This document shows, piece after piece, positions 2,459 to 51,800 of a stretch of DNA of 64,000 nucleotides (the stretch's first letter is position 1; every line of letters begins with the position of its first letter). The notes under the pieces are model-generated. The model was not told the origin of the DNA, ran no database searches, and was given only the letters and a program-made list of their open reading frames with translations. The position numbers and the translations under genes are program-made. Origin of the DNA: Rebecca billardiae RCC1528 (taxonomy: Eukaryota; Protista; Haptophyta); contig OZ251230.1 of assembly GCA_965240325.2 (NCBI GenBank), positions 744,001 to 808,000 of the forward strand. The letters are read 5' to 3'.

Positions 2459-5400
2459 ATGGCTGACGGCGTGGACGCGTCCCCGCTCGCGGAGCTCGCC
2501 AAGCTGTGGGGGGAAGGCGGCGTGGCGGCGCTGCTCGGGGCGAGCGAGGTCAGCTTTACTCGCAACGCGGCTGTCTCCCAGGGCGTGCCGTGGCAGGGCG
2601 TGCTCGAGCTGCTCCTCACGTCCACACGCCTCGAGACACTCAACCTCCGGTGTGCGCAGAGCGGTGGGGCGGGCAGGTGGCGGCGCCACGTGGCGCGAGC
2701 AGACGGAGGCTTGTGGGCGCACAATGCCGTGCATGTGGCTTGTCCATCGGCACGTGTCAGCGCCGCTCCGGGCGCCGCGCCGCCGCCGCCGCGTACGCCG
2801 CACGCGGTGCTCACAGCGGCACGTGAGCGCGAGCACACAGGCGGTGCACGCGCACCGATGCGTGCGCGCGTGACGGGGTCGCGGGCGCTCGAGGCGCGCG
2901 CATGCATGCTGCATCGCGTACGCCATCGCACATGCCGCTCAGTCGCGCCCCGCCCCGCGCCCTCCCCTGCGCGCAGTGCCACCGACGTGGGTGACGAGGG
3001 TGCCACGCAGCTCGGCGCCGCCCTCGCGTCGGGCAAGACGCGCCTGCGGGTGCTGGGCCTCGAGTGAGCGCTGGGGTGGGCACTCGGCGCGGCGCGCGGC
3101 GCGCGGACGGTGGGTGGCGGGGGAGGAGGGTGGGTGGCTTGCGTTGTCGTGGGCATCGATGCGCGCGAGCCCGGGCTGCCGCGCGCGCGCCGCGCCGAGC
3201 GCCGCGCCGCCGCGGCCGCGCGCGCCGCACGCTGCGGCGGCGGCGCGCACACGCGAGCGCGCGCGCGTCGGCGCACGCGCGCCGATGCGTGCGCGCGTGA
3301 CGGGGGCGCGGAAGCTTGCGGCGCGCGTATGCATGCTGCATCACGTGCGCCATCGCACACGCCGCTCAGCCGCGCCCCGCCCCGCGCCCTCCCCTGCGTG
3401 CAGTAACACCGGCGTGGGTGACGAGGGTGCCACGCAGCTCGGCGCCGCCCTCGCGTCGGGCAAGACGCGCCTGCGGGTGCTGGACCTCGGGTGAGCGCTG
3501 GGGTGGGCACTCGGCGCGGCGCGCGGCGCGTGGACGGTGGGCGGCGGGGGAGGAGGGTGGGTGGCGCGCATCGTCACGGGCATCGATGCACGCGAGGCCG
3601 GGCTACCGCGCGCGCGCCGCGCCGAGCGCGGCGCCGCCACCACCGCGCGCGCCACACGCGGCGGCGGCGGCGGCGCGCACACGCGAGCGCGCGCGCATCG
3701 GCACACGCGCGCCGATGCGTGCGCGCGTGACGGGGGCGCGGGCGCTCTAGGCTAGGCGCGCGCATGCATGATGCATCGCGTGCGCCGTCGCACGCGCTGC
3801 TCAGCCGCGCCCCGCCGCGCGCCCTCCCCTGCGCGCAGTCACACCGGCGTGGGTGACGAGGGTGCCACGCAGCTCGGCGCCGCCCTCGCGTCGGGCAAGA
3901 CGCGCCTGCGGGTGCTGAACCTCAGGTGAGCGCTGGGGTGGGCACTCGGCGCGGCGCGCGGCGCGTGGACGGTGGGTGGCGAAGGAGGATGCTGGGTGGC
4001 GTGCATTGTCACGGGCATCGATGCGCACGAGCCCGAGCTGCCGCGCGCGCCCCGCGCCGAGCGCCGTGCCCCCGCCGCCGCGCGCGCCGCACGCGGCGGC
4101 GGCGGCGGCGCGCACACGCGAGCGCGCGCGCATCGGCGCACGCGCGCCGATGCGTGCGCGCGTGACGGGGGCGCGGGAGCTTGCGGCGCGCATGCGTGCT
4201 GCATCGCGTGTGCTATCGCACACGCCGCTCAGCCGCGCCCCGCCCCGCGCCCTCCCCTGCGCGCAGTGAGACCGGCGTGGGTGACGAGGGTGCCACGCAG
4301 CTCGGCGCCGCCCTCGCGTCGGGCAAGACGCGCCTGCGGAAGCTGTACCTCAGGTGAGCGCTGGGGTGGGCACTCGGCGCGGCGCGCGGCGCGTGGACGG
4401 TGGGTGGCGGGGGAGGATGCTGGGTGGCGTGCATTGTCACGGGCATCGATGCGCACGAGCCCGGGCTGCCGCGCGCGCCCCGCGCCGAGCGCCGTGCTGC
4501 CGCCGCCGCGCGCGCCGCACGCAGCGGCGGCGGCGCACACACGCGAGCGCGCGCGCATAGGCGCACGCGCGCCGATGCGTGCGCGCGTGACGGGGGCGCG
4601 GGAGCTTGCGGCGCGCATGCGTGCTGCATCGCGTGTGCTATCGCACACGCCGCTCAGCCGCGCCCCGCCCCGCGCCCTCCCCTGCGCGCAGTCACACCGG
4701 CGTGGGTGACGAGGGTGCCACGCAGCTCGGCGCCGCCCTCGCGTCGGGCAAGACGCGCCTGCGGGTGCTGTACCTCTAGTGAGCGCTGGGGTGGGCACTC
4801 GGCGCGGCGCGCGGCGCGTGGACGGTGGGTGGCGGGGGAGGATGCTGGGTGGCGTGCATTGTCACGGGCATCGATGCGCACGAGCCCGGGCTGCCGCGCG
4901 CGCCCCGCGCCGAGCGCCGTGCTGCCGCCGCCGCGCGCGCCGCACGCAGCGGCGGCGGCGCACACACGCGAGCGCGCGCGCATAGGCGCACGCGCGCCGA
5001 TGCGTGCGCGCGTGACGGGGGCGCGGGAGCTTGCGGCGCGCATGCGTGCTGCATCGCGTGTGCTATCGCACACGCCGCTCAGCCGCGCCCCGCCCCGCGC
5101 CCTCCCCTGCGCGCAGTGAGACCGGCGTGGGTGACGAGGGTGCCACGCAGCTCGGCGCCGCCCTCGCGTCGGGCAAGACGCGCCTGCGGGAGCTGTACCT
5201 CTAGTGAGCGCTGGGGTGGGAACTCGGCGCGGCGCGCGGCGCGTGGAATGTGGGCGGCGGGGGAGGAGGGTGGGTGGCTTGCGTTGTCGTGGGCATCGAT
5301 GCGCGCGAGCGCGGGCTGCCGCGCGCGCGCCGCGCCGAGCGCCACGCCGCCGCCACCGCGCGCGCCGCACGCTGCGGCGGCGGCGGCGCGCACACGCGAG

Positions 5401-8400
5401 CGCGCGCGCATCGGCACACGCGCGCTGATGCGTGCGCGCGTGACGGGGGGCGCGGGAGCTTGCGGCGCGCGCATGGATGCTACGTCGCGTGCGCCATCGC
5501 ACACGCCGCTCAGCCGCGCTCCGCCCCGCGCCCTCCCCTGCGCGCAGTTTCTGCCGCGGCGTGGGTGACGAGGGTGCCACGCAGCTCGGCGCCGCCCTCG
5601 CGTCGGGCAAGACGCGCCTGCGGGAGCTGCACCTCGGGTGAGCGCTGGGGTGGGCACTCGGCGCGGCGCGCGGCGCGTGGACGGTGGGCGGCGGGGGAGG
5701 AGGGTGGGTGGCGTGCATGGTCACGGGCATCGATGCGCGCGAGCCCGGGCTACCGCGCGCGCGCCGCGCCGAGCGCCGCGCCGCCGCCGCCGCGCGCGCC
5801 GCACGCGGCGGCAGCGGCTGCGCGCACACGCGAGCGCGCGCGCATCGCCACACGCGCGCCGATGCGTGCGCGCGTGACGGGGGCGCGGGAGCTTGCGGCG
5901 CGCACGTGTGCATGCTGCATCACGTGCCGCGGCGCGCACGTTTGCATGCTGCATGACGTGCGCCATGGCACACGCCGCTCAGCCGCGCCCCGCCCCGCGC
6001 CCTCCCCTGCGCGCAGTCACACCAGCGTGGGTGACGAGGGTGCCACGCAGCTCGGCGCCGCCCTCGCGTCGGGCAAGACGCGCCTGCGGGTGCTGGACCT
6101 CCGGTGAGCGCTGGGGTGGGCACTCGGCGCGGCGCGCGGCGCGTGGACTGTGGGCGGCGAGGGAGGAGGGTGGGTGGTGCACATCGTCACGGGCATCGAT
6201 GCGCTCGAGCCCGGGCCGCCGCCGCGCGCGCCGCGCCGAGCGCCGCGCCGCCGCCGCCGCGCGCGCCGCACGCTGCGGCAGCGGCGCGCACACGCGAGCG
6301 CGCGCGCATCGGCACATGCGCGCCGATGCGTGCGCGCGTGACGTGGGCGCGGAAGCTTGCGGCGCGCGCGTGCATGCTGCATCGCGTGCGCCATCGCACA
6401 CGCCGCTCAGTCGCGCCCCGCCCCACGCCCTCCCCTGCGCGCAGTGGCACCCCCGCGTCTAACAAGGTCAAGGCACGCGTTGATGAGGCCGTTAACAAGG
6501 CGCGGCTGCAGCAGGAGCCACCCAGGTGAAAGGGGTGGGGGGGATCCCACAACGCGCCACGCCCGTGCATGCGCGGGGCGCGCGGGAAAGGGGGCAGCGG
6601 GTTGCGGTGATTGGCCGCGCTATGCGCGGCGCACCCCGGTTCTGCCACCGCACGCCCCTGGCACGCACTTCGCCACCGCTCACGTGCGCGCCTCGCCCAC
6701 CGCCTGCCTGCGTGTGCAGTGATGACTCTGCTGATGACTCTGCTGACGACTCGGCCTCTGGCGACGAGGCGGGGGCGGAGGCAGCGGAGGAGGCGCAGGC
6801 CGCGCTCGGGGCGCTCGCGGAGCGGCGGCGCGCTGCGGACGCCGCGCGCGCCGCGCTCGGCGCCGAGCAGGCGGCCATCCGCGCCGCCCTCGGCCGCGGC
6901 GGCGTGGACGAGGCGCGGCTGGCGCGGCGCGACGCGCGCCGTGCCGAGCTGGGCGCCGCGCTCGACGCGCTCGGCGCGTGCGCGCTCGACGCGCACGCGG
7001 ACTCGCAGCAGCGCGCGGCGGCGCTGCGTCGCGAGGCGCGCGCGTTGCGCGCGGCGCTCGAGCGCGCGGGCACGCCAGAGCAGCCGCGCGCGCCGGCCGG
7101 CGACGGGTCCGCTCCGGCGCCCCTGCCGCCGTCTCGCGCGCTCGAGCGCGCGGTGGGCGCGGCGGTGCGCGCGCACGACGCCGCAGCGCAGCCCTCCGCC
7201 GCGGGCAGTGGCGGCGCGGCGCTCGCTGCCGCGTGGGCGGAGGTGGCGCGCCAGGCCATCGCCCTCGCGGCGCGCGGCGCGTACGCCGACGCGGACGACG
7301 GCGCGTGCGCCTCGGCGTGGGCGCTCGCCATGCCCGGCCTGTGCGACGCGGCGCGCGCTGCCGCCACAGGCGGCGGTGGCCTGACCGACGCGGCGCGTGC
7401 GCGCGCGGCCGCGTGCGACGAGCTCGCCGCAGTGGCCGAGCGCGCGCGCACGATCGCGCGCGAGGCGGAGGCGGAGGCGCGCGAGCTCCGCGCGCTGCCG
7501 TCCGCCGAGCGCGCGCACGGCGCGCACGAGCTGCGCGAGCGCGAGGAGGCGTGCAGGGCGGCGGCGCGCGCACTGCGCTACGCCCGCCTCGCTCTTGAAG
7601 ATGCGCAGGACGACGGCGGCGACGTGGACGGCGCACAGCGCGCGCTCGTCGACGCGCAGCGGCGCGCGCAGCGCACGCAGCGCGCGCGCGAGCGCTCGCT
7701 CGACCGCCTGTACGAGCTGGCGGGCGGGCCGTTCCCCGAGCTGCCCGCCATGCTGCCCGAGGCGTTCGACGGCGCGGGCGCGCTGCCCGCGGGCGCGCGG
7801 CCCGCGTGGCTGCACGGCCGCACGCTCGCGCAGTACGAGCCGTGCGAGTGGCCCGACGGCGCGGCGCCCGGCCGCGCGCGGCACGAGGTGCTGCTGCGCG
7901 CGTTCGCGGGCGAGCGCGTCGTGCTCAAGGTGTACCCGCTGGCGAGCGACACGGAGCGCCGGCGGCTCGGGCGCGAGGTGGAGTTTGCGCGGGCGCACGC
8001 GCACCCACACCTCGCGCGCGTGGCGGGCGTCTTTGTCGACGAGCCGCGCGGCGCGCGCTGCGCGCTCGTGCAGACGCCGCTCTACTCGGGCGGCACGCTG
8101 CGCGGCTGGCTCGAGCGCGACGAGGCGGTGATGGCCTTGCCGCCCGAGGCGGTGCGCGGCGGCGCGGCGGGCGCGCGAATGCTCGAGCCGGCGCACGCGC
8201 GCGTCGCGCCCGTGCGCGTGCGCGCGCTGCGGCAGCTGCTGGGCGCGCTCGCGCACCTGCACGCGCGCGGCGCGGTGCACGGCGACGTGAAGCTCGAGAA
8301 CGCGTTCGTGCAGCTGCCGGGCGACGACGCGGCCGAGCGGCCGCTCGGCGCGGCCGAGCCGTTCCGCGTGCTGCTCGGCGACTTTGACCTGGCGCGCGTG

Positions 8401-9567
8401 GAGGAGGCGCTGCAGCACGCGGCTGGCGGCGGCGTGCCGAGCGCGACGACGCGCGCGGGCGCGGGCACCGAGGGCCACATGGCGCCCGAGCTGCTCGTGC
8501 CGGGCGCGCGCGCGAGCGCGGCGTCGGACGTGTTCGCGTTCGGCGTGTGCGTGCTGCGCGCGCTCGCGGCCGACGAGCCGACGCGCGCCGCGCTCGTGGG
8601 CTCGCTCGAGGGCGCGCGCGCCGCGGCGGCTGCGCTGGGCGAGCCGCTCGTCGTGGCCGCGCTGGCGGACGCGCCGGGCGCGCGGCCGAGCGCGGCGCAG
8701 CTCGAGGGCGCGGCGCTGTGGGCGGCGAGCGACGAGGCGCTGCGCGCGGCCGAGGCCGAGCGCGAGGCGGCGGCCGCGAGCGCGCGCGCCGCGCTGCGCA
8801 CGTGCGCGGTGTGCTTGGACGAGGAGGTGCCGCCGGACGAGTGCGCCGAGTGCGCGGGCGGCGGGCACGCGGTGTGCTCGCTCTGCCTCTCCATGCACGT
8901 GCAGGTGTGCGCGCAGCCCGACGGCGGCGGCGGCGCGACGCTCGACGCGGACGGGCGCGTGCCGTGCGTCGAGGTGGGCAGCGGCTGCGCGCACGCGTAC
9001 CTGGACGGCGAGCTCGCGCGCCGCACGACCGCCGCGGCGTTCGGCGCGTACTGGCGCGCGCGCGAGCAGCACGCCGAGGCGCGCGGCGAGGAGCGCGCGG
9101 CCGAGCGCGCGCGCGCCGAGGCCGAGCGCCTCGCGGCGCTCAGCGCGGCCGAGCGCGTGCGCGAGCAGCGGCGCGCGCACATCATCGATCATATCCTCAC
9201 GCTCAAGTGCCCGCGCTGCGGCATGGCGTTTGCCGAGTGGCTCGACGGCGCGCGCGGCTTCGACGGCTGCTGCGCGCTGCGCTGCGCGCGCGATCGGTGC
9301 GGCTGCCACTTCTGCGCGTACTGCCTCGCCGACTGCGGCGCCGACGCGCACCCGCACGTGCGCGGCTGCGAGCACGGCAACGGCACGTACTTTGCGCAGC
9401 GCGGCGAGTTTGAGGCGGCGCAGCGCGCGCGGCGCGAGCGCGCGCTGCGCAGCTACCTCGCCGCCGAGGCGGGCGCGGACGACGCGGCGCGCCGAGCGAT
9501 CGTCGCGTCCGTCGAGCGCGAGCTGCGCGACCTCCGCATCGACCCAGACGCACTCGCGCGCGAGTGA
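2459..9567 (+). CDS. LRR - coiled coil - protein kinase - RING/RBR-like protein, copy 1 (8 LRR exons)
   Basis: Predicted exons, all GT-AG and phase 2: 2459-2649; LRR exons 2977-3063, 3404-3490, 3839-3925, 4267-4353, 4692-4778, 5117-5203, 5548-5637, 6017-6103; cap 6445-6525; terminal exon 6720-9567. The terminal exon has VVLK, HGDVKLEN, DFD, GTEGHMAPE, SDVFAFG, a C3HC4 RING and CPRC..GCCALRC..FCAYC. The frame stays open after splicing. Confidence 0.85.
2650..6444 (+). repeat. Tandem ~430-bp intron + LRR-exon cassettes, array 1
   Basis: Repeated unit GTGAGCGCTGGGGTGGG...GCTCAGCCGCGCCCCGCCCCGCGCCCTCCCCTGCGCGCAG followed by an 87-nt exon encoding xTxVGDEGATQLGAALASGKTRLRxLxLx. Confidence 0.95.
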
Positions 9568-9806
9568 CCGATGGGCCCCTGGGGCGTCGGCTGCGCGCAG
9601 TCAGGCGCTGGCGAGGACTAGGGCACGAGCTGAGCGCGATGATGCTCGGCGGGGGCCACGTGCGCGGATGCACCGCCACGCTGAACACGCTGGTGCCGAA
9701 TCGCACGTGGCGGCTGGGGGCGCTCACCCAGCTCCGCGCCGTCGAGAGCTCCGAGCCGGAGCTACGCCGGCCGCTGAGGGGCGTCGGGGAGAGGGATGAG
9801 ACGGAG

Positions 9807-11474: not shown

Positions 11475-11650
11475 TACGCGGCCGTCCACGGCCGCGGGAG
11501 ATTGGGCAGCCATCAAGACGACTCGCCCTCGTCACGAAAAGCTGAGACGAAAATCGAAAGGAGCGGGGAGCCTCGCATCCGGACAAGCACGCACCGGACT
11601 CCGGAAGGCATCGGCCATCGCCGCTCTCGGAGGCCGCCCAGCACGAGAGC

Positions 11651-14600
11651 ATGGCTGATGGCGTGGACGCGTCCCCGCTCGCGGAGCTCGCCAAGCTGTG
11701 GGGGGAAGGCGACGTGGCGGCGCTGCTCGGGGCGAGCGAGGTTGGCCTTCATGACGAAGCGGTCTCCCAGGGCGTGCCGTGGCAGGGCGTGCTCGAGCTG
11801 CTCCTCACGTCCACACGCCTCGAGAAACTCTGCCTCGGGTGTGCGCAGAGCGGTGGGGCGGGCAGGTGGCGGCGCCACGTGGCGCGTGCAGACGGAGGCA
11901 CATGGGCACACAATGTCGTGCATGTGGCTGGCCTGTCGGCACGTGTCAGCGCCGCTCCGGGCGCCGCGCCACCGCCGCCGCGTACGCCGCACGCGCTGCT
12001 CACAGCGGCACATGCGCGCGAGCACACAGGCGGTGCACGCGCGGAGATGCGTGCATGCGTGACGGGCGGACGGGAGCTGGAGGCGCGCGAATGCATGCTG
12101 CATCGCGTGCGCCATCGCACACGCCGCTCAGCCGCGCCCCGCCCCGCGCCCTCCCCTGCGCGCAGTCTCTGTAAAGGCGTGGGTGACGAGGGTGCCACGC
12201 AGCTCGGCGCCGCCCTCGCGTCGGGCAAGACGCGCCTGCGGACGCTGAGCCTCTAGTGAGTGCTGGGGTGGGCACTCGGCGCGGCGCGCGGCGCGTGGAC
12301 GGTGGGCGGCGGGGGAGGAGGGTGGGTGGCTTGCGTTGTCGCGGGCATCGATGCGCGCGAGCCCGGGCTGCCGCGCGCGCCCCGCGCCGAGCGCCGTGCC
12401 CCCGCCGCGGCGCGCGCCGCACGCTGCGGCGGCGGCGGCGCGCACACGCGAGCGCGCGCGCATCGGCGCACGCGCGCCGATGCGTGCGCGCGTGACGTGG
12501 GCGCGGGAGCTTGCGGCGCGCGTATGCATGCTGCATTACGTGTGCCATCGCACACGCCGCTCAGCCGCGCCCCGCCCCGCGCCCTCCCCTGCGCGCAGTC
12601 ACACCGGCGTGGGTGACGAGGGTGCCACGCAGCTCGGCGCCGCCCTCGCGTCGGGCAAGACGCGCCTGCGGGAGCTGGACCTCGAGTGAGCGCTGGGGTG
12701 GGCACTCGGCGCGGCGCGCGGCGCGTGGACTGTGGGCGGCGGGGGAGGAGGGTGGGTGGCTTGCGTTGTCGCGGGCATCGATGCGCGCGAGCCCGGGCTG
12801 CCGCGCGCGCCCCGCGCCGAGCGCCGTGCCCCCGCCGCGGCGCGCGCCCCACGCTGCGGCGGCGGCGGCGCGCACACGCGAGCGCGCGCGCATCGGCGCA
12901 CGCGCGCCGATGCGTGCGCGCGTGACGGGGGCGCGGGAGCTTGCGGCGCGCGTATGCATGCTGCATTACGTGTGCCATCGCACACGCCGCTCAGCCGCGC
13001 CCCGCCCCGCGCCCTCCCCTGCGCGCAGTGCCACCCGCGTGGGTGACGAGGGTGCCACGCAGCTCGGCGCCGCCCTCGCGTCGGGCAAGACGCGCCTGCG
13101 GAAGCTGTACCTCTTGTGAGCGCTGGGGTGGGCACTCGGCGCGGCGCGCGGCGCGTGGACGGTGGGCGGCGGGGGAGGAGGGTGGGTGGCGCGCATCGTC
13201 ACGGGCATCGATGCACGCGAGGCCGGGCTACCGCGCGCGCGCCGCGCCGAGCGCGGCGCCGCCACCACCGCGCGCGCCGCACGCGGCGGCGGCGGCGGCG
13301 CGCACACGCGAGCGCGCGCGCATCGGCGCACGCGCGCCGATGCGTGCGCGCGTGACGGGGGCGCGGGAGCTTGCGGCGCGCGCGTGCATGCTGGATCGCG
13401 TGCGCCATCGCACACGCCGCTCAGCCGCGCCCCGCCCCGCGCCCTCCCCTGCGCGCAGGTCCACCGGCGTGGGTGACGAGGGTGCCACGCAGCTCGGCGC
13501 CGCCCTCGCGTCGGGCAAGACGCGCCTGCGGGTGCTGGACCTCGGGTGAGCGCTGGGGTGGGCACTCGGCGCGGCGTGCGGCGCGTGGACGGTGGGCGGC
13601 GGGGGAGGAGGCTGGGTGGCGTGCATCGTCAAGGGCATCGATGCGCGCGAGCCCGGGCCACCGCGCGCGCGCCGCGCCGAGCGTCGCCGCCGCCGCCGCC
13701 GCGCGCACCGCACGCTGCGGCAGCGGCGGCGCGCACACGCGAGCGCGCGCGCATCGGCGCACGCGCGCCGATGCGTGCGCGCGTGACGGGGGCGCGGGAG
13801 CTTGCGTTTCGCGCGTGCATGCTGCATCGCGTGCGCCATTGCACACGCCGCTCAGCCGCGCCCCGCCCCACGCCCTCCCTTGCGCGCAGTGGCACCCACA
13901 CGTCTAACAAGGTCGAGGCACGCGTTGATGAGGCCGTGAAGGCGAACAGTGCTCGGCTGCAGCAGGAGCCACCCAGGTGCAAGCGGAGGGGGGCCACAAC
14001 GCGACGCGCCCGTGCACACGCGGGGCGGGCGGGAGAGGGAGCAGTGGGTTGCGATGATCGGCCGCCCGATGCGCGGTGCACCCCGGCTCTGCCACCGCAC
14101 ACCTGTGGCACGCACTTCGCCACCGCTCACGTGCGCGCCTCACCCACCGCCTGCCTGCGCGCGCAGTGACGACTCTGCTGACGACTCTGCTGACGATTCG
14201 GCCTCTGACGACGAGGCGGAGGCAGCGGAGGAGGCGCAGGCCGCGCTCGAGGCGCTCGCGGAGCGGCGGCGCGCTGCGGACGCCGCGCGCGCCGCGCTCG
14301 GCGCCGAGCAGGCGGCCATCCGCGCCGCCCTCGGCCGCGGCGGCGTGGACGAGGCGCGGCTGGCGCGGCGCGACGCGCGCCGTGCCGAGCTGGGCGCCGC
14401 GCTCGAGGCGCTCGGCGCGTGCGCGCTCGACGCGCACGCGGACTCGCAGCAGCGCGCGGCGGCGCTGCGTCGCGAGGCGCGCGCGTTGCGCGCGGCGCTC
14501 GAGCGCGCGGGCACGCCAGAGCAGCCGCGCGCGCCAGCGGGCGACGGCTCCGCTCCGGCGCCCCTGCCGCCGCCCCGCGCGCTCGAGCGCGCGGTGGGCG

Positions 14601-19898: not shown

Positions 19899-19938
19899 TA
19901 CGCGGCCGTCCACGGCCGCGGGAGATTGGGCAGCCATC

Positions 19939-22069: not shown

Positions 22070-22117
22070 TACAAGACGACTCGCGCTCGTCACGAAATGA
22101 CGAAAAGCTGAGACGAA

Positions 22118-32550: not shown

Positions 32551-32823
32551 CCGGTGGGCCCCGGGGGCGTCGGCTGCGCGCAGCCAGGCGCGGGCGGGCA
32601 CGTGGGCACGAGCTGAGCGCGATGATGCTCTGCGGGGGCCACGTGCGCGGATGCACCGCCACGCTGAACACGCTGGTGCCGAATCGCACGTGGCGGCTGG
32701 GGGCGCTCACCCAGTTCAGCGCCGTCGAGATCTCCGAGCCGGAGCTACGCCGGCCGCTGAGGGGCGTCGGGGAGAGGGATGAGACGGAGGCGCGCGCAGC
32801 GACGATGCGCGGCTCGGTGGCTA

Positions 32824-34366: not shown

Positions 34367-34542
34367 TACCGGCCGTCCACCGCCGCGGGAGATTGGGCAG
34401 CCATCAAGACGACTCGCCCTCGTCACGAAAAGGCAAAAGCTGAGACGAAATGAAAGGCTCGCATCCGGACCAGCAACCACCGGAACTCCGGAAGGCATCG
34501 GCCACCAGCCTCGCCACTCTCGGAGGCGCCCAGTGCGACAGC

Positions 34543-40500: not shown

Positions 40501-43500
40501 CGTGAGCGCGCGCGCATCGGCACACGCGCGCTGATGCGTGCGCGCGTGACGGGCGGGCGGGAGCTTGCGGCGCGCGCATGCATGCTGCATCGCGCGCGCC
40601 ATCGCACACGCCGCTCAGCCGCGCTCCGCCCCGCGCCCTCCCCTGCGCGCAGTCTCACCGGCGTGGGTGACGAGGGTGCCACGCAGCTCGGCGCCGCCCT
40701 CGCGTCGGGCAAGACGCGCCTGCGGAAGCTGGACCTCGAGTGAGCGCTGGGGTGGGCACTCGGCGCGGCGCGTGGTGCGTGGATGATGGACGGCGGGGGA
40801 GGAGGCTGGGTGACGCGCATCGTCACGGGCATCGATGCGCGCGAGCCCGGGCTGCCGCGCGCGCCCCGCGCCGAGCGCCGCGCCGCCGCCGCCGAGCGGG
40901 CCGCACGCTGCGGCAGCGGCGGCGCGCACACGCGAGCGCGCGCGCATCGGCGCACGCGCGCCGATGCGTGCGCGCGTGACGGGGGCGCGGGAGCTTGCGG
41001 CGCGCGCATGCATGCTGCCTCACGTGCGCCATCGCACACGCCGCTCAGCCGCGCCCCGCCCCGCGCCCTCCCCTGCGCGCAGTCGCACCGGCGTGGGTGA
41101 CGAGGGTGCCACGCAGCTCGGCGCCGCCCTCGCGTCGGGCAAGACGCGCCTGCGGGAGCTGAACCTCTAGTGAGCGCTGGGGTGGGCACTCGGCGCGGCG
41201 CGCGGCGCGTGGACGGTGGGCGGCGGGGGAGGAGGCTGGGTGGCGATCATCGTCACGGGCATCGATGCGCACGAGCCCGGGCTACCGCGCGCGCGCCGCG
41301 CCGAGCGCCGCGCCGCCGCGGCCGCGCGCGCCGCACGCTGCGGCAGCGGCGGCGCGCACACGCGAGCGCGCGCGCATCGGCGCACGCGCGCCGATGCGTG
41401 CGCGCGTGACGGGGGCGCGGGCGCTTGCGGCGCGCGCATGGATGCTGCATCGCGTGCGCCATCGCACACGCCGCTCAGCCGCGCCCCGCCCCGCGCCCTC
41501 CTCTGCGCGCAGTTACACCCCCGCGTCTGACGAGGTCAAGGAACGCGTCAATCAGGCCCTGGAGGCGAACAGTGCTCGGCTGCAGCAGGAGCCACCCAGG
41601 TGCAAGGGGGGGGGGGGGGGCACAACGCGCCGCGCCCGTGCATGCGCGGGGCGGGCGGGAAAGGGGGCAGCGGCTGGCTGTGATTGGCCGCCCCATGCGC
41701 AACGCACCCCGGCTCTGCCACCGCACGCCCGTGGCACGCGCTTGGCCGCCGCTCACGTGCGCACCTCGCCCACCGCCTGCCTGCGCGCGCAGTGATGACT
41801 CTGCTGACGACTCTGCTGATGACTCTGCTGACGACTCTGCTGACGACTCTGCTGACGACTCGGCCTCTGGCGACGAGGCGGAGGCGGAGGAGCCGGAGAC
41901 CGCGCTCGAGGCGCTCGCGGAGCGGCGGCGCGCTGCGGACGCCGCGCGCGCCGCGCTCGGCGCCGAGCAGGCGGCCATCCGCGCCGCCCTCGGCCGCGGC
42001 GGCGTGGACGAGGCGCGGCTGGCGCGGCGCGACGCGCGCCGTGCCGAGCTGGGCGCCGCGCTCGAGGCGCTCGGCGCGTGCGCGCTCGACGCGCACGCGG
42101 ACTCGCAGCAGCGCGCGGCGGCGCTGCGTCGCGAGGCGCGCGCGTTGCGCGCGGCGCTCGAGCGCGCGGGCACGCCAGAGCAGCCGCGCGCGCCAGCCGG
42201 CGACGGCTCCGCTCCGGCGCCCCTGCCGCCGCCTCGCGCGCTCGAGCGCGCGGTGGGCGCGGCGGTGCGCGCGCACGACGCCGCAGCGCCCACCTCAGGC
42301 GCGGGCGGTGGCGGCGCGGCGCTCGCTGCCGCGTGGGCGGAGGTGGCGCGCCAGGCCATCGCCCTCGCGGCGCGCGGCACGTACGCCGACGCGGACGACG
42401 GCGCGTGCGCCTCGGCGTGGGCGCTCGCCATGCCCGGCCTGTGCGACGCGGCGCGCGCTGCCGCCACAAGCGGCGGCGGCCTGACCGACGCGGCGCGCGC
42501 GCGCGCGGCCGCGTGCGACGAGCGCGCCGCAGTGGCCGAGCGCGCGCGCACGATCGCGCGCGAGGCGGAGGCGGAGGCGCGCGAGCTGCGCGCGCTGCCG
42601 TCCGCCGAGCGCGCGCACGGCGCGCACGAGCTGCGCGAGCGCGAGGAGGCGTGCAGGGCGGCGGCGCGCGCGCTGCGCCTCGCGCGCCACGCTTTAGAAA
42701 ACGCGCAGGACGACGGCGGCGACGTGGACGGCGCACAGCGCGCACTCGTCGACGCGCAGCGGCGCGCGCAGCGCACGCAGCGCGCGCGCGAGCGCTCGCT
42801 CGACCGCCTGTACGAGCTGGCGGGCGGGCCGTTCCCCGAGCTGCCCGCCATGCTGCCCGAGGCGTTCGACGGCGCGGGCGCGCTGCCCGCGGGCGCGCGG
42901 CCCGCGTGGCTGCACGGCCGCACGCTCGCGCAGTACGAGCCGTGCGAGTGGCCCGACGGCGCGGCGCCCGGCCGCGCGCGGCACGAGGTGCTGCTGCGCG
43001 CGTTCGCGGGCGAGCGCGTTGTGCTCAAGGTGTACCCGCTGGCGAGCGACACGGAGCGCCGGCTGCTCGGGCGCGAGGTGGAGTTTGCGCTGGCGCACGC
43101 GCACCCACACCTCGCGCGCGTGGCGGGCGTCTTTGTCGACGAGCCGCGCGGCGCGCGCTGCGCGCTCGTGCAGACGCCGCTCTACTCGGGCGGCACGCTG
43201 CGCGGCTGGCTCGAGCGCGACGAGGCGGCGGCGGGCTTGCCGCCCGAGGCGGTGCGCGGTGGCGCGGCGGGCGCGCGTATGCTCGAGCCGGCGCACGCGC
43301 GCGTCGCGCCCGTGCGCGTGCGCGCGCTGCGGCAGCTGCTGGGCGCGCTCGCGCACCTGCACGCGCGCGGCGCGGTGCACGGCGACGTGAAGCTCGAGAA
43401 CGCGTTCGTGCAGCTGCCGGGCGACGACGCGGCCGAGCGGCCGCTCGGCGCGGCCGAGCCGTTCCGCGTGCTGCTCGGCGACTTTGACCTGGCGCGCGTG

Positions 43501-44667
43501 GAGGAGGCGCTGCAGCACGCGGCTGGCGGCGGCGTGCCGAGCGCGACGACGCGCGCGGGCGCGGGCACCGAGGGCCACATGGCGCCCGAGCTGCTCGTGC
43601 CCGGCGCGCGCGCGAGCGCGGCGTCGGACGTGTTCGCGTTCGGCGTGTGCGTGCTGCGCGCGCTCGCGGCCGACGAGCCGACGCGCGCCGCGCTCGTGGG
43701 CTCGGTGCAGGGCGCGCGCGCCGCGGCGGCTGCGCTGGGCGAGCCGCTCGTCGTGGCCGCGCTGTCGGACGCGCCGGGCGCGCGGCCGAGCGCGGCGCAG
43801 CTCGAGGGCGCGGCGCTGTGGGCGGCGAGCGACGAGGCGCTGCGCGCGGCCGAGGCCGAGCGCGAGGCGGCGGCCGCGAGCGCGCGCGCCGCGCTGCGCA
43901 CGTGCGCGGTGTGCTTGGACGAGGAGGTGCCGCCGGACGAGTGCGCCGAGTGCGCGGGCGGCGGGCACGCGGTGTGCTCGCTCTGCCTCTCCACGCACGT
44001 GCAGCTGTGCGCGCAGCCCGACGGCGGCGGCGGCGCGACGCTCGACGCGGACGGGCGCGTGCCGTGCGTCGAGGTGGGCAGCGGCTGCGCGCACGCGTAC
44101 CTGGACGGCGAGCTCGCGCGCCGCACGACCGCCGCGGCGTTCGGCGCGTACTGGCGCGCGCGCGAGCAGCACGCCGAGGCGCGCGGCGAGGAGCGCGCGG
44201 CCGAGCGCGCGCGCGCCGAGGCCTTGCGCCTCGCGGCGCTCAGCGCGGCCGAGCGCGTGCGCGAGCAGCGGCGCGCGCACATCATCGATCATATCCTCAC
44301 GCTCAAGTGCCCGCGCTGCGGCATGGCGTTTGCCGAGTGGCTCGACGGCGCGCGCGGCTTCGACGGCTGCTGCGCGCTGCAGTGCGCGCGCGATCGGTGC
44401 GGCTGCCACTTCTGCGCCTACTGCCTCGCCGACTGCGGCGCCGACGCGCACCCGCACGTGCGCGGCTGCGAGCACGGCAACGGCACGTACTTTGCGCAGC
44501 GCGGCGAGTTTGAGGCGGCGCAGCGCGCGCGGCGTGAGCGCGCGCTGCGCCGCTACCTCGCCGACGAGGCGGGCGCGGACGACGCGGCGCGCCGAGCGAT
44601 CGTCGCGTCCGTCGAGCGCGAGCTGCGCGACCTCCGCATCGACCCAGACGCACTCGCGCGCGAGTGA
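34543..44667 (+). CDS. LRR - kinase - RING/RBR-like protein, copy 4 (15 LRR exons)
   Basis: Exons 34543-34733; LRR exons start at 35061, 35490, 35920, 36347, 36777, 37205 (90 nt), 37638, 38068, 38500, 38930, 39360, 39792, 40222, 40653, 41083; cap 41513-41599; terminal 41793-44667. Confidence 0.85.
34734..41512 (+). repeat. Intron + LRR-exon cassettes, array 4
   Basis: Same ~430-bp unit, 15 exons. Confidence 0.95.
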
Positions 44668-44940
44668 CCGGTGGGCCCCGGGGGCGTCGGCTGCGCGCAG
44701 CCAGGCGCGGGCGGGCACGTGGGCACGAGCTGAGCGCGATGATGCTCTGCGGGGGCCACGTGCGCGGATGCACCGCCACGCTGAACACGCTGGTGCCGAA
44801 TCGCACGTGGCGGCTGGGGGCGCTCACCCAGCTCCGCGCCGTCGAGAGCTCCGAGCCGGAGCTACGCCGGCCGCTGAGGGGCGTCGGGGAGAGGGATGAG
44901 ACGGAGGCGCGCGCAGCGACGATGCGCGGCTCGGTGGCTA

Positions 44941-45687
44941 CGCGCTCCAGTGAACGGCGCACGGTGAACGAGTTGGCGACCTTCTCCTTCGTGATGACGA
45001 TTAAATCGCTCAGCTTGCCGAGGAGGATCCCCGCCCACTTGTGCGCGTACCCGCTCGACGCGCCCACGGCGACCGCAGCGTCGGCGAGCTCGATCCCCGA
45101 TCGGATCAGCTCCTCGCGCCGCGCCGCGTCCTCGGCCGCCTGCTTGGACAGCTCGTAGCGCGCGCGCGCACGCCGCCAGAGGAGCTCGACGTCGTCAGCC
45201 GCGGGTGCAGCGGAGGCCTCCTGCTCGAGCAGTGCGTACAGCGCTTCGTATTCGCCCGCGGCGTGCATCTCGTCCGCGCGCGAGAAGCGCGCTGGGCTCT
45301 CTTCGAGGGGCGGTGCCATCTGCCCACTCGGCCTCTCGAGGCTGGTCGCACTCCCGGCGTCAGGTGAGGCCGAGCCGTCCAGTGCAGCCCGCGCTGCAGC
45401 CTCGCCCGGGGCGGTAGCATCGGGTTTGCGGCGGCGATAGAGCCGCAGCGGGGAAAGGCGCGAGAGAACCCGACGTACGCGGCCAGGCGGCGCTGAAGCT
45501 CCCTCCTCACGTTCCTCCTCGCAGGACGAATCCGCCGCATCATGGCAACACACGTGCGTGCAGGCGAAGGCGGCAGGAGCTTGCATCCGGGCGCGAGGGT
45601 CGGAGATGAGCCTGGCCAGTGCGTGCGAGGAATGTGGGCACCACCAAAGGGCACGGCGGCGATTACTAGCACGACGGCCAACCGCAT
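44941..45687 (-). pseudogene. RMD1-like copy 5, 3'-truncated with a 5' frameshift
   Basis: Nearly identical to copy 4 but without the MITE. Confidence 0.8.
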
Positions 45688-45864
45688 TACGCGGCCGTCC
45701 ACCGCCGCGGGAGATTGGGCAGCCATCAAGACGACTCGCCCTCGTCACGAAAAGGCAAAAGCTGAGACGAAATGAAAGGCTCGCATCCGGACCAGCAACC
45801 ACCGGAACTCCGGAAGGCATCGGCCACCAGCCTCGCCACTCTCGGAGGCGCCCAGTGCGACAGC

Positions 45865-48800
45865 ATGGCTGATGGCGTGGACGCGTCCCCGCTCGCGGAG
45901 CTCGCCAAGCTGTGGGGGAAAGGCGACGTGGCGGCGCTGCTCGAGGCGAGCGAGGTCAGCCTTGATGGCAACGCGGCTGTCTCTCAGGGCGTGCCGTGGC
46001 AGGGCGTGCTCCAGCTGCTCCTCACGTCCACACGCCTTGAGACACTCAACCTCTGGTGTGCGCAGAGCGGTGGGGCGGGCAGGTGGCGGCGCCACGTGGC
46101 GCGTGCAGACGGAGGCGTATGGGCACACACTGCCCTGCATGTGGCTGGCCCATCGGCACGTGTCAGCGCCGCTCCGGGTGCCGCGCCGCCGCCGCCGTGT
46201 ACGCCGCACGCGCTGCTCACAGCGGCACGTGCGCGCGAGCACACAGGCGGTGCACGCGCGGAGATGCGTGCGCGCGTGACGGGCGGGCGGGAGCTTGAGG
46301 CGCGCGCATGCATGCTGCATCGCGTGCGCCATCGCACACGCCGCTCAGCCGCGCCCCGCCCCGCGCCCTCCCCTGCGCGCAGTGAGACCGGCGTGGGTGA
46401 CGAGGGTGCCACGCAGCTCGGCGCCGCCCTCGCGTCGGGCAAGACGCGCCTGCGGGAGCTGGACCTCAGGTGAGCGCTGGGGTGGGCACTCCGCGCGGCG
46501 CGCGGCGCGTGGACGTTGGGTGGCGGGGGGGGAGGCTGGGTGGTGCGCATCGTCACGGGCATCGATGCGCACGAGCCCGGGCCGCCGCGCGCGCGCCGCG
46601 CCGAGCGCCGCGCCGCCGCCGCCGCGCGCGCCCGCGCGGCGGCGGCGGCGGCGCGCACACGCAAGCGCGCGCGCATCGGCGCACGCGCGCCGATGCGTGC
46701 GCGCGTGACGGGGGCGCGGGAGCTTGCGGCGCGCGCATGCATGCTGCCTCACGTGTACCATCGCACACGCCGCTCAGCCGCGCCCCGCCCCGCGCCCTCC
46801 CCTGCGCGCAGTGAGACCGGCGTGGGTGACGAGGGTGCCACGCAGCTCGGCGCCGCCCTCGCGTCGGGCAAGACGCGCCTGCGGGTGCTGGACCTCTGGT
46901 GAGCGCTGGGGTGGGCACTCGGCGCGGCGCGCGGCGCGTGGACGTTGGGTGTCGGGGGGGGAGGCTGGGTGGCGCGCGTTGTCGCGGGCATCGATGCGCA
47001 CGAGCCCGGGCTGCCGCGCGCGCGCCGCGCCGAGCGCCGTGCCCCCGCGGCCGCGCGCGCCGCCTTCGGCGGCGGCGGCGGCGCGCACACGCGAGCGCGC
47101 GCGCATCGGCGCACGCGCGCCGATGCGTGCGCGCGTGACGGGGGCGCGGGAGCGTGCGGCGCGCGTATGCATGCTGCATCGCGTGCGCCATCGCACACGC
47201 CGCTCAGCCGCGCCCCGCCCCGCGCCCTCCCCTGCGCGCAGTTTCACCGGCGTGGGTGACGAGGGTGCCACGCAGCTCGGCGCCGCCCTCGCGTCGGGCA
47301 AGACGCGCCTGCGGAAGCTGAACCTCGGGTGAGCGCTGGGGTGGGCACTCGGCGCGGCGCGCGGCGCGTGGACGGTGGGTGGCGGGGGGGGGGGCTGGGT
47401 GGCGCGCGTTGTCGCGGGCATCGATGCGCACGAGCCCGGGCTGCCGCGCGCGCGCCGCGCCGAGCGCCGTGCCGCCGCCGCCGCGCGCGCCGCACGCTGT
47501 GGCGGCGGCGCGCACACGCGAGCGCGCGCGCATCGGCGCACGCGCGCCGATGCGTGCGCGCGTGACGGGCGGGCGGGAGCTTGCGGCGCGCGCATGCATG
47601 CTGCATCGCGCGCGCCATCGCACACGCCGCTCAGCCGCGCTCCGCCCCGCGCCCTCCCCTGCGCGCAGTCTCACCGGCGTGGGTGACGAGGGTGCCACGC
47701 AGCTCGGCGCCGCCCTCGCGTCGGGCAAGACGCGCCTGCGGAAGCTGAACCTCGGGTGAGCGCTGGGGTGGGCACTCGGCGCGGCGCGCGGCGCGTGGAC
47801 GGTGGGTGGCGGGGGGGGGGGCTGGGTGGCGCGCGTTGTCGCGGGCATCGATGCGCACGAGCCCGGGCTGCCGCGCGCGCGCCGCGCCGAGCGCCGTGCC
47901 GCCGCGGCCGCGCGCGCCGCCTTCGGCGGCGGCGGCGGCGCGCACACGCGAGCGCGCGCGCATCGGCGCACGCGCGCCGATGCGTGCGCGCGTGACGGGG
48001 GCGCGGGAGCGTGCGGCGCGCGTATGCATGCTGCATCGCGTGCGCCATCGCACACGCCGCTCAGCCGCGCCCCGCCCCGCGCCCTCCCCTGCGCGCAGTT
48101 TCACCGGCGTGGGTGACGAGGGTGCCACGCAGCTCGGCGCCGCCCTCGCGTCGGGCAAGACGCGCCTGCGGGAGCTGGGCCTCTTGTGAGCGCTGGGGTG
48201 GGCACTCGGCGCGGCGCGCGGCGCGTGGACGGTGGGCGGCGGGGGAGGAGGGTGGTTGGCGTGCATCGTCACGGGCATCGATGCGCTCGAGCCCGGGCCG
48301 CCGCCGCGCGCGCCGCGCCGAGCGCCGCGCCGCCGCCGCCGCGCACGCCGCACGCTGCGGCGGCGGCACGCACACGCGAGCGCGCGCGCATCGGCGCACG
48401 CGCGCCGATGCGTGCGCGCGTGACGGGCGGGCGGGAGCTTGCGGCGCGCGCATGCATGCTGCATGGCGCGCGCCATCGCACACGCCGCTCAGCCGCGCTC
48501 CGCCCCGCGCTCTGCCCTGCGCGCAGTTGCACCGGCGTGGGTGACGAGGGTGCCACGCAGCTCGGCGCCGCCCTCGCGTCGGGCAAGACGCGCCTGCGGG
48601 TGCTGGGCCTCAGGTGAGCGCTGGGGTGGGCACTCGGCGCGGCGCGTGGTGCGTGGACGGTGGGCGGCGGGGGAGGAGGGTGGGTTGCGTGCGTTGTCAC
48701 GGGCATCGATGCGCGCGAGCCCGGGCCACCACGCGCGCCCCGCGCCGAGCGCCGCGCCGTCGCCGCCGCGCGCGCCGCACGCTGCGGCAGTGGTCGCGCG

Positions 48801-51800
48801 CACACGCGAGCGCACACGCATCGGCGCACGCGCGCCGATGCGTGTGCGCGTGACGGGGTCGCGGGCGCTCGAGGCGCGCGCATGCATGCTGCATCGCGTG
48901 CGCCATTGCACACGCCGCTCAGCCGCGCCCCGCCCCGCGCCCTCCCCTGCGCGCAGTGCCACCCGCGTGGGTGACGAGGGTGCCACGCAGCTCGGCGCCG
49001 CCCTCGCGTCGGGCAAGACGCGCCTGCGGGCGCTGCACCTCTAGTGAGCGCTGGGGTGGGCACTCGGCGCGGCGTGCGGCGCGTGGACGGTGGGTGGCGG
49101 GGGAGGAGGGTGGTTGGCGTGCATCGTCACGGGCATCGATGCGCTCGAGCCCGGGCCGCCGCCGCGCGCGCCGCGCCGAGCGCCGCGCCGCCGCCGCCGC
49201 GCACGCCGCACGCTGCGGCGGCGGCACGCACACGCGAGCGCGCGCGCATCGGCGCACGCGCGCCGATGCGTGCGCGCGTGACGGGCGGGCGGGAGCTTGC
49301 GGCGCGCGCATGCATGCTGCATGGCGCGCGCCATCGCACACGCCGCTCAGCCGCGCCCCGCCCCGCGCCCTCCCCTGCGCGCAGTGACACCCACGTGGGT
49401 GACGAGGGTGCCACGCAGCTCGGCGCCGCCCTCGCGTCGGGCAAGACGCGCCTGCGGGTGCTGGGCCTCAGGTGAGCGCTGGGGTGGGCACTCGGCGCGG
49501 CGCGTGGTGCGTGGATGTTGGACGGCGGGGGAGGAGGGTGGGTGACGCGCATCGTCACGGGCATCGATGCGCGCGAGCCCGGGCTGCCGCGCGCGCCCCG
49601 CGCCGAGCGCCGCGCCGCCGCCGCCGAGCGGGCCGCACGCTGCGGCAGCGGCGGCGCGCACACGCGAGCGCGCGCGCATCGGCGCACGCGCGCCGATGCG
49701 TGCGCGCGAGACGGGGGTGCTGGAGCTTGCGGCGCGTGCATGCATGCTGCATCGCGTGTGCCATCGCACACGCCGCTCAGCCGCGCCCCGCCCCGCGCCC
49801 TCCCCTGCGCGCAGTGACACCCGCGTGGGTGACGAGGGTGCCACGCAGCTCGGCGCCGCCCTCGCGTCGGGCAAGACGCGCCTGCGGGAGCTGTACCTCT
49901 GGTGAGCGCTGGGGTGGGCACTCGGCGCGGCGCGCGGTGCGTGGACGGTGGGCGGCGGGGGAGGAGGGTGGGTTGCGTGCGTTGTCACGGGCATCGATGC
50001 GCGCGAGCCCGGGCCACCACGCGCGCCCCGCGCCGAGCGCCGCGCCGTCGCCGCCGCGCGCGCCGCACGCTGCGGCAGTGGTCGCGCGCACACGCGAGCG
50101 CACACGCATCGGCGCACGCGCGCCGATGCGTGTGCGCGTGACGGGGTCGCGGGCGCTCGAGGCGCGCGCATGCATGCTGCATCGCGTGCGCCATTGCACA
50201 CGCCGCTCAGCCGCGCCCCGCCCCGCGCCCTCCCCTGCGCGCAGTCGCACCGGCGTGGGTGACGAGGGTGCCACGCAGCTCGGCGCCGCCCTCGCGTCGG
50301 GCAAGACGCGCCTGCGGGTGCTGAGCCTCCAGTGAGCGCTGGGGTGGGCACTCGGCGCGGCGTGCGGCGCGTGGACGGTGGGTGGCGGGGGAGGAGGGTG
50401 GGTGGCGCACAGCACCATAGGCATCGATGCGCGCGAGCCCGGGCGGCCGCGCGCGCGCCGCGCCGAGCGCGGCGCCGCCACCACCGCGCACGGCGCACGC
50501 TGCGGCAGCGGCGGCGCGCACACGCGAGCGCGCGCGCATCGGCGCACGCGCGCCGATGAGTGCGCGCGTGTCGGGGGCGCGGGAGCTTGCGGCGCGCACG
50601 TTTGCATGCTGCATCACGTGCGCCATCGCACACGCCGCTCAGCCGCGCCCCGCCCCGCGCCCTCCCCTGCGCGCAGTCGGACCCGCGTGGGTGACGAGGG
50701 TGCCACGCAGCTCGGCGCCGCCCTCGCGTCGGGCAAGACGCGCCTGCGGGTGCTGAACCTCTTGTGAGCGCTGGGGTGGGCACTCGGCGCGGCGCGCGGC
50801 GCGTGGACGGTGGGCGGCGGGGGAGGAGGCTGGGTGGCGATCATCGTCACGGGCATCGATGCGCACGAGCCCGGGCCGCCGCCGCGCGCGCCGCGCCGAG
50901 CGCCGCGCCGCCGCCGCCGCGCGCGCCGCACGCTGCGGCGGCGGCGGCACGCACACGCGAGCGCGCGCGCATCGGCGCACGCGCGCCGATGCGTGCGCGC
51001 GTGACGGGCGGGCGGGAGCTTGCGGCGCGCGCATGCATGCTGCATCGCGCGCGCCATCGCACACGCCGCTCAGCCGCGCTCCGCCCCGCGCCCTCCCCTG
51101 CGCGCAGTCTCACCGGCGTGGGTGACGAGGGTGCCACGCAGCTCGGCGCCGCCCTCGCGTCGGGCAAGACGCGCCTGCGGAAGCTGGACCTCGAGTGAGC
51201 GCTGGGGTGGGCACTCGGCGCGGCGCGTGGTGCGTGGATGATGGACGGCGGGGGAGGAGGCTGGGTGACGCGCATCGTCACGGGCATCGATGCGCGCGAG
51301 CCCGGGCTGCCGCGCGCGCCCCGCGCCGAGCGCCGCGCCGCCGCCGCCGAGCGGGCCGCACGCTGCGGCAGCGGCGGCGCGCACACGCGAGCGCGCGCGC
51401 ATCGGCGCACGCGCGCCGATGCGTGCGCGCATGACGGGGGCGCGGGAGCTTGCGGCGCGCGCATGCATGCTGCCTCACGTGCGCCATCGCACACGCCGCT
51501 CAGCCGCGCCCCGCCCCGCGCCCTCCCCTGCGCGCAGTCGCACCGGCGTGGGTGACGAGGGTGCCACGCAGCTCGGCGCCGCCCTCGCGTCGGGCAAGAC
51601 GCGCCTGCGGGAGCTGCGCCTCGGGTGAGCGCTGGGGTGGGCACTCGGCGCGGCGCGCGGCGCGTGGACGGTGGGCGGCGGGGGAGGAGGCTGGGTGGCG
51701 ATCATCGTCACGGGCATCGATGCGCACGAGCCCGGGCTACCGCGCGCGCGCCGCGCCGAGCGCCGCGCCGCCGCGGCCGCGCGCGCCGCACGCTGCGGCA

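Follow-up and report, generated by a model that had tools for sequence, protein, structure and literature searches.

The analyzed window is a stretch of 64,000 nucleotides from the haptophyte Rebecca billardiae RCC1528 (assembly GCA_965240325.2, contig OZ251230.1, positions 744,001 to 808,000 of the forward strand), and it carries five arrays of leucine-rich repeat (LRR) exons which belong to five intact tandem paralogues. Here we surveyed the anatomy of these genes and analyzed the distribution of variation along their repeats, in which an almost unchanging scaffold surrounds a few highly variable codons. Each gene is composed of an exon 1 that opens with the ATG start (the first position given for each gene in Table 1) and in gene 1 supplies the N-terminal cap, a series of LRR exons, a short cap exon and one large last exon. 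The five arrays hold 8, 4, 11, 15 and 13 LRR exons respectively, with a unit spacing of 425-466 nt.

The last exon has 946-958 codons, and its product contains acidic Ser-Asp repeats, a coiled-coil region rich in Ala, a protein kinase and, at the C-terminus, a Cys/His region. It begins with an acidic microrepeat of Ser-Ala-Asp-Asp type whose copy number varies among the paralogues, and for this reason the lengths of the last exons differ. The kinase was found by Pfam with E-values of 1e-13 to 1e-14, and its catalytic-loop Asp and Asn, the DFD metal site and the APE motif are all readable. The Cys/His columns of the C-terminal region are invariant in the alignment with homologues. The AlphaFold model of this region has a pLDDT of 84, and all 50 PDB matches listed by Foldseek for the model were RBR ligases or RING/Rcat domains, the matches being weak (best E 1.4e-3, TM about 0.24). 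The zf-C3HC4 family was matched at E=0.006, short of the Pfam cut-off, IBR_1 was matched at E=0.043 in the homologue P0009, and no sequence in the PDB was matched by the C-terminal 288 residues of gene 1. Judging by its model, the tail appears RBR-like and is not called an RBR domain here. The Pfam search of the last exon returned only Pkinase, PK_Tyr_Ser-Thr and the weak zf-C3HC4, and NACHT, NB-ARC, Roc and COR were not found by it. The Kyte-Doolittle mean stays below 1.6 in every 19-residue window (it peaks at 1.53, inside the kinase) and no hydrophobic N-terminus or signal peptide was found, therefore a cytosolic location is probable for the proteins. The nearest proteins in the databases come from an MMETSP transcriptome and JGI samples and share 45-47% identity with the last exon over its stretch from the kinase to the zinc fingers, and a protein of Pavlovales sp. 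CCMP2436 is 35% identical. The more distant P0009 has the same domain order, with LRRs like those of ribonuclease inhibitor (RI), a kinase and IBR-like fingers.

Table 1. Positions of the five LRR genes, their parts and other features in the 64,000-nt window
Feature	Position	Strand	Details
Gene 1	2459-9567	+	exon 1 2459-2649; LRR exons 2977-6103; cap 6445-6525; last exon 6720-9567
Gene 1 LRR array	2977-6103	+	8 exons, one of 90 nt; introns 338-379 nt
Gene 1 last exon			Pfam Pkinase E=1.2e-14
Gene 1 C-terminal 288 residues	8701-9564	+	RING-like module, long helix, second Cys/His module of IBR/Rcat type
Gene 2	11651-17005	+	4 LRR exons 12166-13545; cap 13890-13976; last exon 14167-17005
Gene 3	24175-32550	+	11 LRR exons 24690-29062; cap 29406-29492; last exon 29685-32550
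Gene 4	34543-44667	+	15 LRR exons 35061-41169; cap 41513-41599; last exon 41793-44667
Gene 4 last exon			Pfam Pkinase E=2.2e-13, zf-C3HC4 E=0.0088
Gene 5	45865-55122	+	13 LRR exons 46383-51624; cap 51968-52054; last exon 52248-55122
Acidic microrepeat of last exon	6720-6770; from 14167, 29685, 41793 and 52248		Ser-Ala-Asp-Asp type
90-nt LRR exon, gene 1	5548-5637		one extra codon
90-nt LRR exon, gene 2	12166-12255		one extra codon
90-nt LRR exon, gene 3	26833-26922		one extra codon
90-nt LRR exon, gene 4	37205-37294		one extra codon
LRR exons with G as first base	13459; 28551		G instead of T
Core singleton, gene 3	27749		T>G, Ser>Ala
Core singleton, gene 3	28192		C>T, Arg>Trp
Core singleton, gene 4	38522		G>C, Gly>Arg
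Two neighbouring introns	4354-4691; 4779-5116	+	identical over 338 nt; 6 of 11 flanking variable nucleotides differ
Intron with predicted fold	35148-35489		example
RMD1-3 (regulator of microtubule dynamics) ORF	1273-2325	-	E=1.2e-21; divergent, upstream of gene 1
64-bp unit, five copies	22469-22798		92% matches; lower-GC spacer between genes 2 and 3
Reverse transcriptase ORF	61670-63319	+	549 codons; RVT_1 E=1.3e-16; about 6.5 kb downstream of the gene 5 stop

The typical LRR exon is 87 nt long and provides 29 residues, which are made up of one split-codon base, 28 codons and two bases, and it is of phase 2 at both ends. The exon borders read CAG/ and /GTGAGC, with AG/GT present at 51 of 51 cassettes. 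The repeat motif reads L-R-x1-L-x2-L-x3-x4-T-x5-V-G-D-E-G-A, where x1 to x5 are the variable residues, and the intron splits this binding motif, because x1, x2 and most of x3 are placed at the 3′ end of one exon and x4 and x5 at the 5′ end of the next. In the same manner exon 1 ends in L-x-L plus a split variable codon, and the cap exon opens with x4-T/M-x5.

A 63-nt core of the exon was searched with up to three mismatches allowed. It gave 51 matches, all on the + strand, of which 48 are exact and three carry a single change, and 100 shuffles gave none. The three changes are all singletons and all amino-acid replacements. In each exon 24 of the 29 residues are fixed, and the fixed part holds no silent variant; the repeats are on average 86.7% identical pairwise in protein and 93.4% in DNA, across arrays of 116-435 residues. 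The sequence-only reading of this DNA had described the core as near-identical even at synonymous sites in the 51 exons, with single changes at three positions only, and both observations were reproduced, the changes lying exactly where it had placed them. Its exon scheme stands for the core and the motif, and was corrected for the exon length of 87 nt or 29 residues, for four exons of 90 nt and for two exons that start with G.

The 90-nt exons occur once each in genes 1-4, and in them x4-T is replaced by F-C-R, L-C-K, S-C-G or D-D. Three of the four have Cys for Thr at the Asn/Cys position of the motif plus the added residue, and the exon of gene 2 contains the rare codons TGT and AAA. The second and the fifth codon of the core are the rare Gly codon GGT in 102 of 102 cases, while in the last exons it accounts for 7 of 439 Gly codons. 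JGI metagenome contigs were scanned for exact matches to 36 nt of the core and gave none, and no family was returned by an Rfam scan of the whole window.

Five codons are found at x1 (GTG, GAG, AAG, ACG and GCG), eight NNC codons at x2, ten NN dinucleotides at x3, to which the next exon adds its first base, 15 single codons and four longer variants at x4, and five codons at x5 (GGC, CGC, CAC, GAC and AGC). The amino-acid entropy is 3.5 bits at x4, 3.1 at x3, 2.6 at x2, 1.6 at x1 and 1.2 at x5, and it does not exceed 0.1 at the other 24 positions. The third positions of x1, x2 and x5 and the intervening CTG, CTC and ACC codons are invariant, the third position of x4 is C or G, and the only synonymous pair among the variable codons is CGC/CGG at x4. 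Stop codons were looked for among the 255 variable codons and none was found. All transitions and transversions are seen, and all four bases are present at most of the variable positions. The mutual information between x1 and x2, whose codons are 6 nt apart, equals its permutation mean, which means linkage equilibrium; there are 35 distinct x1-x2-x3 triplets in 51 exons and 40 distinct full strands in 46. The per-site entropy confirms the earlier restriction of the variation to x1-x5, every allele which had been listed for these sites is present, and the seven strands quoted from the first copy read as given. That changes fall almost only on codon positions 1-2 is correct for x1, x2 and x5, with their invariant third positions, and was corrected for x4, whose third position varies.

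The position of these sites in the fold was analyzed through alignment and through the model of a homologue. Taken by itself, one exon could be aligned with porcine RI (1dfj/2bnh, E=0.002) and, as the best PDB sequence match, with the designed RI-like LRR 4r5d (E=2e-4), and the RI alignment puts T at the Asn/Cys position of LxxLxLxxN. By these features the repeat is classified as an RI-type LRR of 29 residues, with a LxxLxLxx(N/C/T)xL-type motif followed by a helix. Pfam gave no match on single LRR exons because the LRR_6 model spans the exon junction. The AlphaFold model of residues 35-300 of P0009 has a pLDDT of 82.7 and a regular alternation of strand and helix, and Foldseek matched it to RI (1a4y/2bex) with a TM of 0.85 and also to the LRR domains of NOD2 and NLRP proteins. 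In this model the three-residue strand corresponds to x1-L-x2, and the equivalents of x3, x4, T and x5 are placed between the strand and the helix. By register with the model, two of the variable residues would flank the buried Leu of the strand and three would lie in the following loop. It is established for LRR solenoids that the x residues of the strand point to the concave side, and for RI that most ligand contacts are made by the strand-to-helix loops. The proposal that the five sites form an exposed binding surface is thus compatible with the strand and loop register in the homologue. Mapping on the concave surface was likewise used for brown-algal receptors (PMC3341825, PMC11378527).

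The diversity was then compared on three levels, namely core, introns and variable sites. In the 46 internal introns (338-379 nt, about 343) the nucleotide diversity (pi) is 0.081 and 176 of 340 columns segregate. In the core it is 0.0019, with 3 of 63 columns segregating (Fisher P = 7e-14 against the introns), and in the DNA of the 24 fixed residues it is 0.002. At positions 1-2 of the variable codons pi ranges from 0.08 to 0.73 with a mean of 0.52, which after Jukes-Cantor correction is about ten times the intron distance. The classical ratio of nonsynonymous to synonymous rates (dN/dS) was not computable, since the LRR exons have no silent variation, and a tree-based site model was dropped because the copies are reticulate, with a minimum number of recombination events (Rmin) of 22 and a mean intron distance of 0.0816 both within and between genes. 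The rate test was instead calibrated on the introns and on the four-fold sites of the last exon. Among the five paralogues the last exon has silent differences (pS) of 0.02-0.038 and a ratio of nonsynonymous to silent differences (pN/pS) of 0.3-0.6. Its four-fold sites segregate at 35 of 629, or about 0.4 times the noncoding rate, for which the paralogous noncoding stretches give 0.11-0.17 per site. On the scale of the last exon the variable codons change about 25 times as fast as the silent sites of these genes. The youngest comparisons, seven unit pairs of genes 4 and 5, show 2 of 77 differences at variable sites against 8 of 2403 in introns, a ratio of about 8 (P = 0.036). The rate at the variable sites is far above neutral, and relaxed constraint is therefore excluded; the suggestion of diversifying selection at the five codons came through this test.

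The absence of silent change in the scaffold was also examined against an expectation. Silent change is possible in these genes since the last exon shows it, yet none is present in the fixed LRR codons. The number of silent segregating sites expected in the 24 fixed codons is 3.6-5.7 and the number observed is 0 (P = 0.003-0.026, for a silent to noncoding ratio of 0.32-0.5). The GC content at third codon positions (GC3) is 95% in these genes, and 100 of the 148 biallelic changes in the introns are from GC to AT, with 19 between G and C, hence most third-position changes would make disfavoured codons. Conservation extends into the intron ends and fades gradually, pi being 0.007 over the initial 20 nt and 0.03 over the final 40. 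This gradient would be equally compatible with gene conversion centred on the exons or with constraint from splicing signals.

Exchange between the copies can be seen directly. The region of gene 4 (34343-45200) was compared with that of gene 5 (45664-55640) and with the 3′ part of gene 3 (29063-33100). Genes 4 and 5 are near-identical beginning upstream of the array. No difference separates them in the 623 nt that lead from the final LRR exon to the last exon, nor in the first tenth of the last exon (about 290 nt), after which 46 sites differ. Their 3′ flanks are 8% apart, whereas the 3′ flank of gene 4 matches that of gene 3 with 3 differences in 500. Since its 5′ part is like gene 5 and its 3′ flank like gene 3, gene 4 is a recombinant between tandem paralogues, and such mosaic paralogues directly show the concerted evolution which had been presumed for the locus.

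A second kind of evidence comes from the introns and the variable nucleotides on their two sides. Eleven intron pairs are less than 1% apart; in eight of them the 11 variable nucleotides on the flanks differ at 0-1 places and in three at 6-7, the latter including two neighbouring introns of gene 1 (Table 1). In the opposite direction, identical x1-x2-x3 triplets adjoin introns which are 7-10% apart. When the duplicates of genes 4 and 5 are excluded, the similarity at variable sites is uncorrelated with any part of the adjacent intron or with the other half of the strand (Mantel r about 0). The all-or-none flanks fit a replacement of small blocks, with junctions hidden in the core and in the conserved intron ends, and do not fit a gradual accumulation of changes.

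Taking these results together, we consider it probable that the locus is the product of germline concerted evolution and diversifying selection acting on a tandem family of LRR, kinase and RBR-like genes. Unequal crossing-over and gene conversion, within and between genes, would hold the scaffold identical and at the same time shuffle blocks of variable codons, and the invariant core together with the conserved intron ends would supply the homology for these exchanges. Selection would retain amino-acid-changing point mutations only at the five codons for ligand contact. The proteins would likely act in a fast-evolving recognition inside the cell, with signalling via the kinase and the ubiquitin-ligase-like tail. 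Selection as the cause, conversion as the homogenizing process and the immune-type function are what we infer from these patterns.

Several points weigh against this explanation. The exon model follows from sequence logic and conservation, and the structural mapping was made on the model of a homologue and the register of the motif, not on a model of this protein itself. The silent-site deficit is moderately significant once the GC3 bias is allowed for, and it could reflect splicing or RNA constraint rather than conversion. Linkage equilibrium at a distance of 6 nt cannot be produced by block exchange alone, and for that reason recurrent point mutation in a large and old pool of cassettes must be assumed. 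A burst-like targeted process would also look similar to the all-or-none pattern of the intron flanks.

The alternative which survives best, though we regard it as unlikely, is that the core is frozen by purifying selection on the nucleotides themselves, through exonic splicing signals by which 87-nt exons are told apart among near-identical splice sites or through RNA structure, while the variable codons are still diversifying. The missing silent variants, the retention of the rare GGT codon in every core and the gradual decay of conservation into both intron ends are what such a constraint would give, and structure prediction brings the two ends of the introns together in a paired fold (z = -3.9). 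However, taken by themselves the intron ends pair only a little better than shuffles of matched composition (z -1.4 to -2.2), so that pairing as the cause of the end conservation was set aside, and the terminal intron stem shows no compensatory double changes. Conversion and crossing-over between paralogues are, moreover, directly visible and would yield the same gradient. Constraint at the nucleotide level and conversion are not mutually exclusive.

The introns have features of their own. In the predicted fold, for example that of the intron listed in Table 1, the G-rich 5′ end pairs with the C-rich 3′ end and the splice sites are brought together; variants compatible with G-U pairing are commoner than variants which break pairs. 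A 9-bp palindromic hairpin (CATCGGCGC ... GCGCCGATG) is conserved inside the introns.

A programmed or targeted diversification is a considerably more doubtful explanation than nucleotide constraint. Here the variable codons would be rewritten by templated conversion from cassettes, in the style of the lamprey variable lymphocyte receptor (VLR) or chicken immunoglobulin (Ig), or by a local mutator, in somatic or meiotic cells, with the core and the intron ends as homology arms. The introns of 338-343 nt which are identical and yet flanked by variable sites differing at 6-7 of 11 nucleotides, in an all-or-none distribution, would be expected from such a process, as would the frozen silent sites and a layout (NNG, NNC, NN/T) that resembles a designed library. 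But no positive sign of targeted mutation was seen in the sequence. Each of the 51 core copies of the window lies in frame in an exon with canonical splice sites that belongs to a complete gene, and neither an orphan donor cassette nor a template copy is among them. The presence of all substitution types is not adenine-specific and not deaminase-like. No known mutator spares third positions, for which it would need codon-phase resolution, whereas selection together with the 95% GC3 bias does so naturally, and the youngest pairs differ by single point changes, one of which is synonymous. The particular form in which half-strand cassettes are exchanged from templates among the LRR arrays, giving each clone its own receptor repertoire as in VLR or chicken Ig, is slightly less probable still; if true, it would be a VLR-like or chicken-Ig-like system in a unicellular alga.

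Neutral drift at five unconstrained surface positions of recently amplified repeats is very improbable. By register the positions are solvent-exposed and could tolerate many residues, but their diversity, which exceeds that of the intervening introns about ten times and the silent rate at least 25 times, cannot be neutral since neutral sites do not exceed the neutral rate, and none of the 255 codons is a stop. An artefact of assembly or polishing that homogenized the repeat can hardly be credited: long tandem repeats are error-prone in assemblies, but copy-specific differences are kept in the introns and in the variable codons in a codon-aware manner, the five frames are open and the exon indels are whole codons.

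The explanation by concerted evolution and diversifying selection can be placed beside systems which are already described. The ROCO (LRR-ROC-COR) genes of brown algae carry one LRR of 23-24 residues per 72-nt phase-2 exon (Zambounis et al. 2012, PMC3341825; Teng et al. 2024, PMC11378527). They are reported to shuffle their exons and to have four sites under selection on the concave face, and they were proposed as fast-evolving receptors of immune type (PMC3341825, PMC11378527). The present genes share with them one repeat per symmetric phase-2 exon with a length that is a multiple of 3, the tandem duplication of exon and intron together, the small number of positively selected sites and a mapping to the concave face, which here comes from the register of the homologue's model. 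They differ in the 87-nt exons with 29-residue RI-type repeats, in the output, which is a kinase and RBR-like fingers with no Roc or COR match in Pfam, and in the lineage, a haptophyte and not a brown alga. The scaffold DNA also differs, being identical in 48 of 51 exons without silent change, whereas in the Ectocarpus exons dS was estimated and used.

In fungal NLR proteins the repeats (WD40 in HET-E/D/R and NWD genes, ANK and TPR) are more than 85% identical and evolve in concert within and between paralogues, and about four positions per repeat are positively selected, on the binding surface (Dyrka et al. 2014, PMC4986451). No LRR motifs were found in the fungal NLRs of that survey, and repeat-induced point mutation (RIP) was proposed as the fungal mutator (PMC4986451). 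The likeness lies in an identity above 85% over at least 100 residues (here 86.7%), in the exchange between paralogues and in the few selected surface sites; unlike the fungal proteins, the present ones have RI-type LRRs, no NACHT or NB-ARC was found in them by Pfam, and nothing resembling RIP was seen.

The germline VLR genes of lamprey and hagfish are incomplete, and somatic assembly completes them with cassettes from their flanks. Both systems have an LRR solenoid whose scaffold is invariant, modular cassettes and diversity on the concave side, the last of which comes here from the register of the homologue's model. But here there are five complete and spliceable germline genes, no orphan cassettes in the window and no sign of somatic change in the sequence. 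A diversity-generating retroelement (DGR) has a pair of template and variable repeats, adenine-specific changes and an adjoining reverse transcriptase (RT). Variable codons of NNC type with a fixed third base and an RT open reading frame (ORF) about 10 kb downstream are points of resemblance. A DGR was ruled out, as no copy of the repeat exists outside the exons, the variation is not anchored on adenine and the RT gives only a generic RVT_1 match. The RT ORF itself (Table 1) is probably a retroelement, and no template-like LRR copy is near it. A plant-type LRR receptor kinase was rejected also, because neither a signal peptide nor a transmembrane segment was found and the repeats are of RI type. 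Consensus-designed libraries of repeat proteins, of which the RI-like LRR 4R5D is an example, likewise have an identical scaffold and a few randomized surface positions, which is an analogy only, the arrays here being natural genes. By its defining features the locus is not an NLR, ROCO, VLR or DGR system, and it differs from them in the repeat class (RI type, 29 residues), the output domains (kinase and RBR-like), the lineage and the identity of the scaffold DNA.

Other features of the window are as follows. An ORF of the RMD1-3 family lies upstream of gene 1, and part of the stretch upstream of gene 1 is duplicated ahead of gene 5. The 7-kb spacer between genes 2 and 3 has a tandem repeat of a 64-bp unit and gave no significant Pfam match. 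For Diacronema lutheri a genome with 73% GC was reported, and the word 'leucine' is absent from the text of that genome paper (PMC8379373). The present window is very GC-rich, at 57 to 82% per 2-kb window, which is compatible with a pavlovophyte such as D. lutheri, whose genome is the nearest published one in GC content.

Haptophytes are major primary producers of the sea and are attacked by giant viruses, and to our knowledge their recognition receptors are largely unknown. The proteins of this locus are candidate sensors of viruses or other pathogens. The same design is known from brown algae with LRR exons and from fungi with WD, ANK and TPR repeats, and it is found here with the RI-type LRR class of the animal NLRs, joined to a kinase and a tail that appears ubiquitin-ligase-like. 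With 24 fixed and five free residues, an unusually clean pattern, the repeat may serve as a natural model for concerted evolution and diversifying selection acting within a few nucleotides of each other, and the map of its scaffold may be usable for the engineering of binders.

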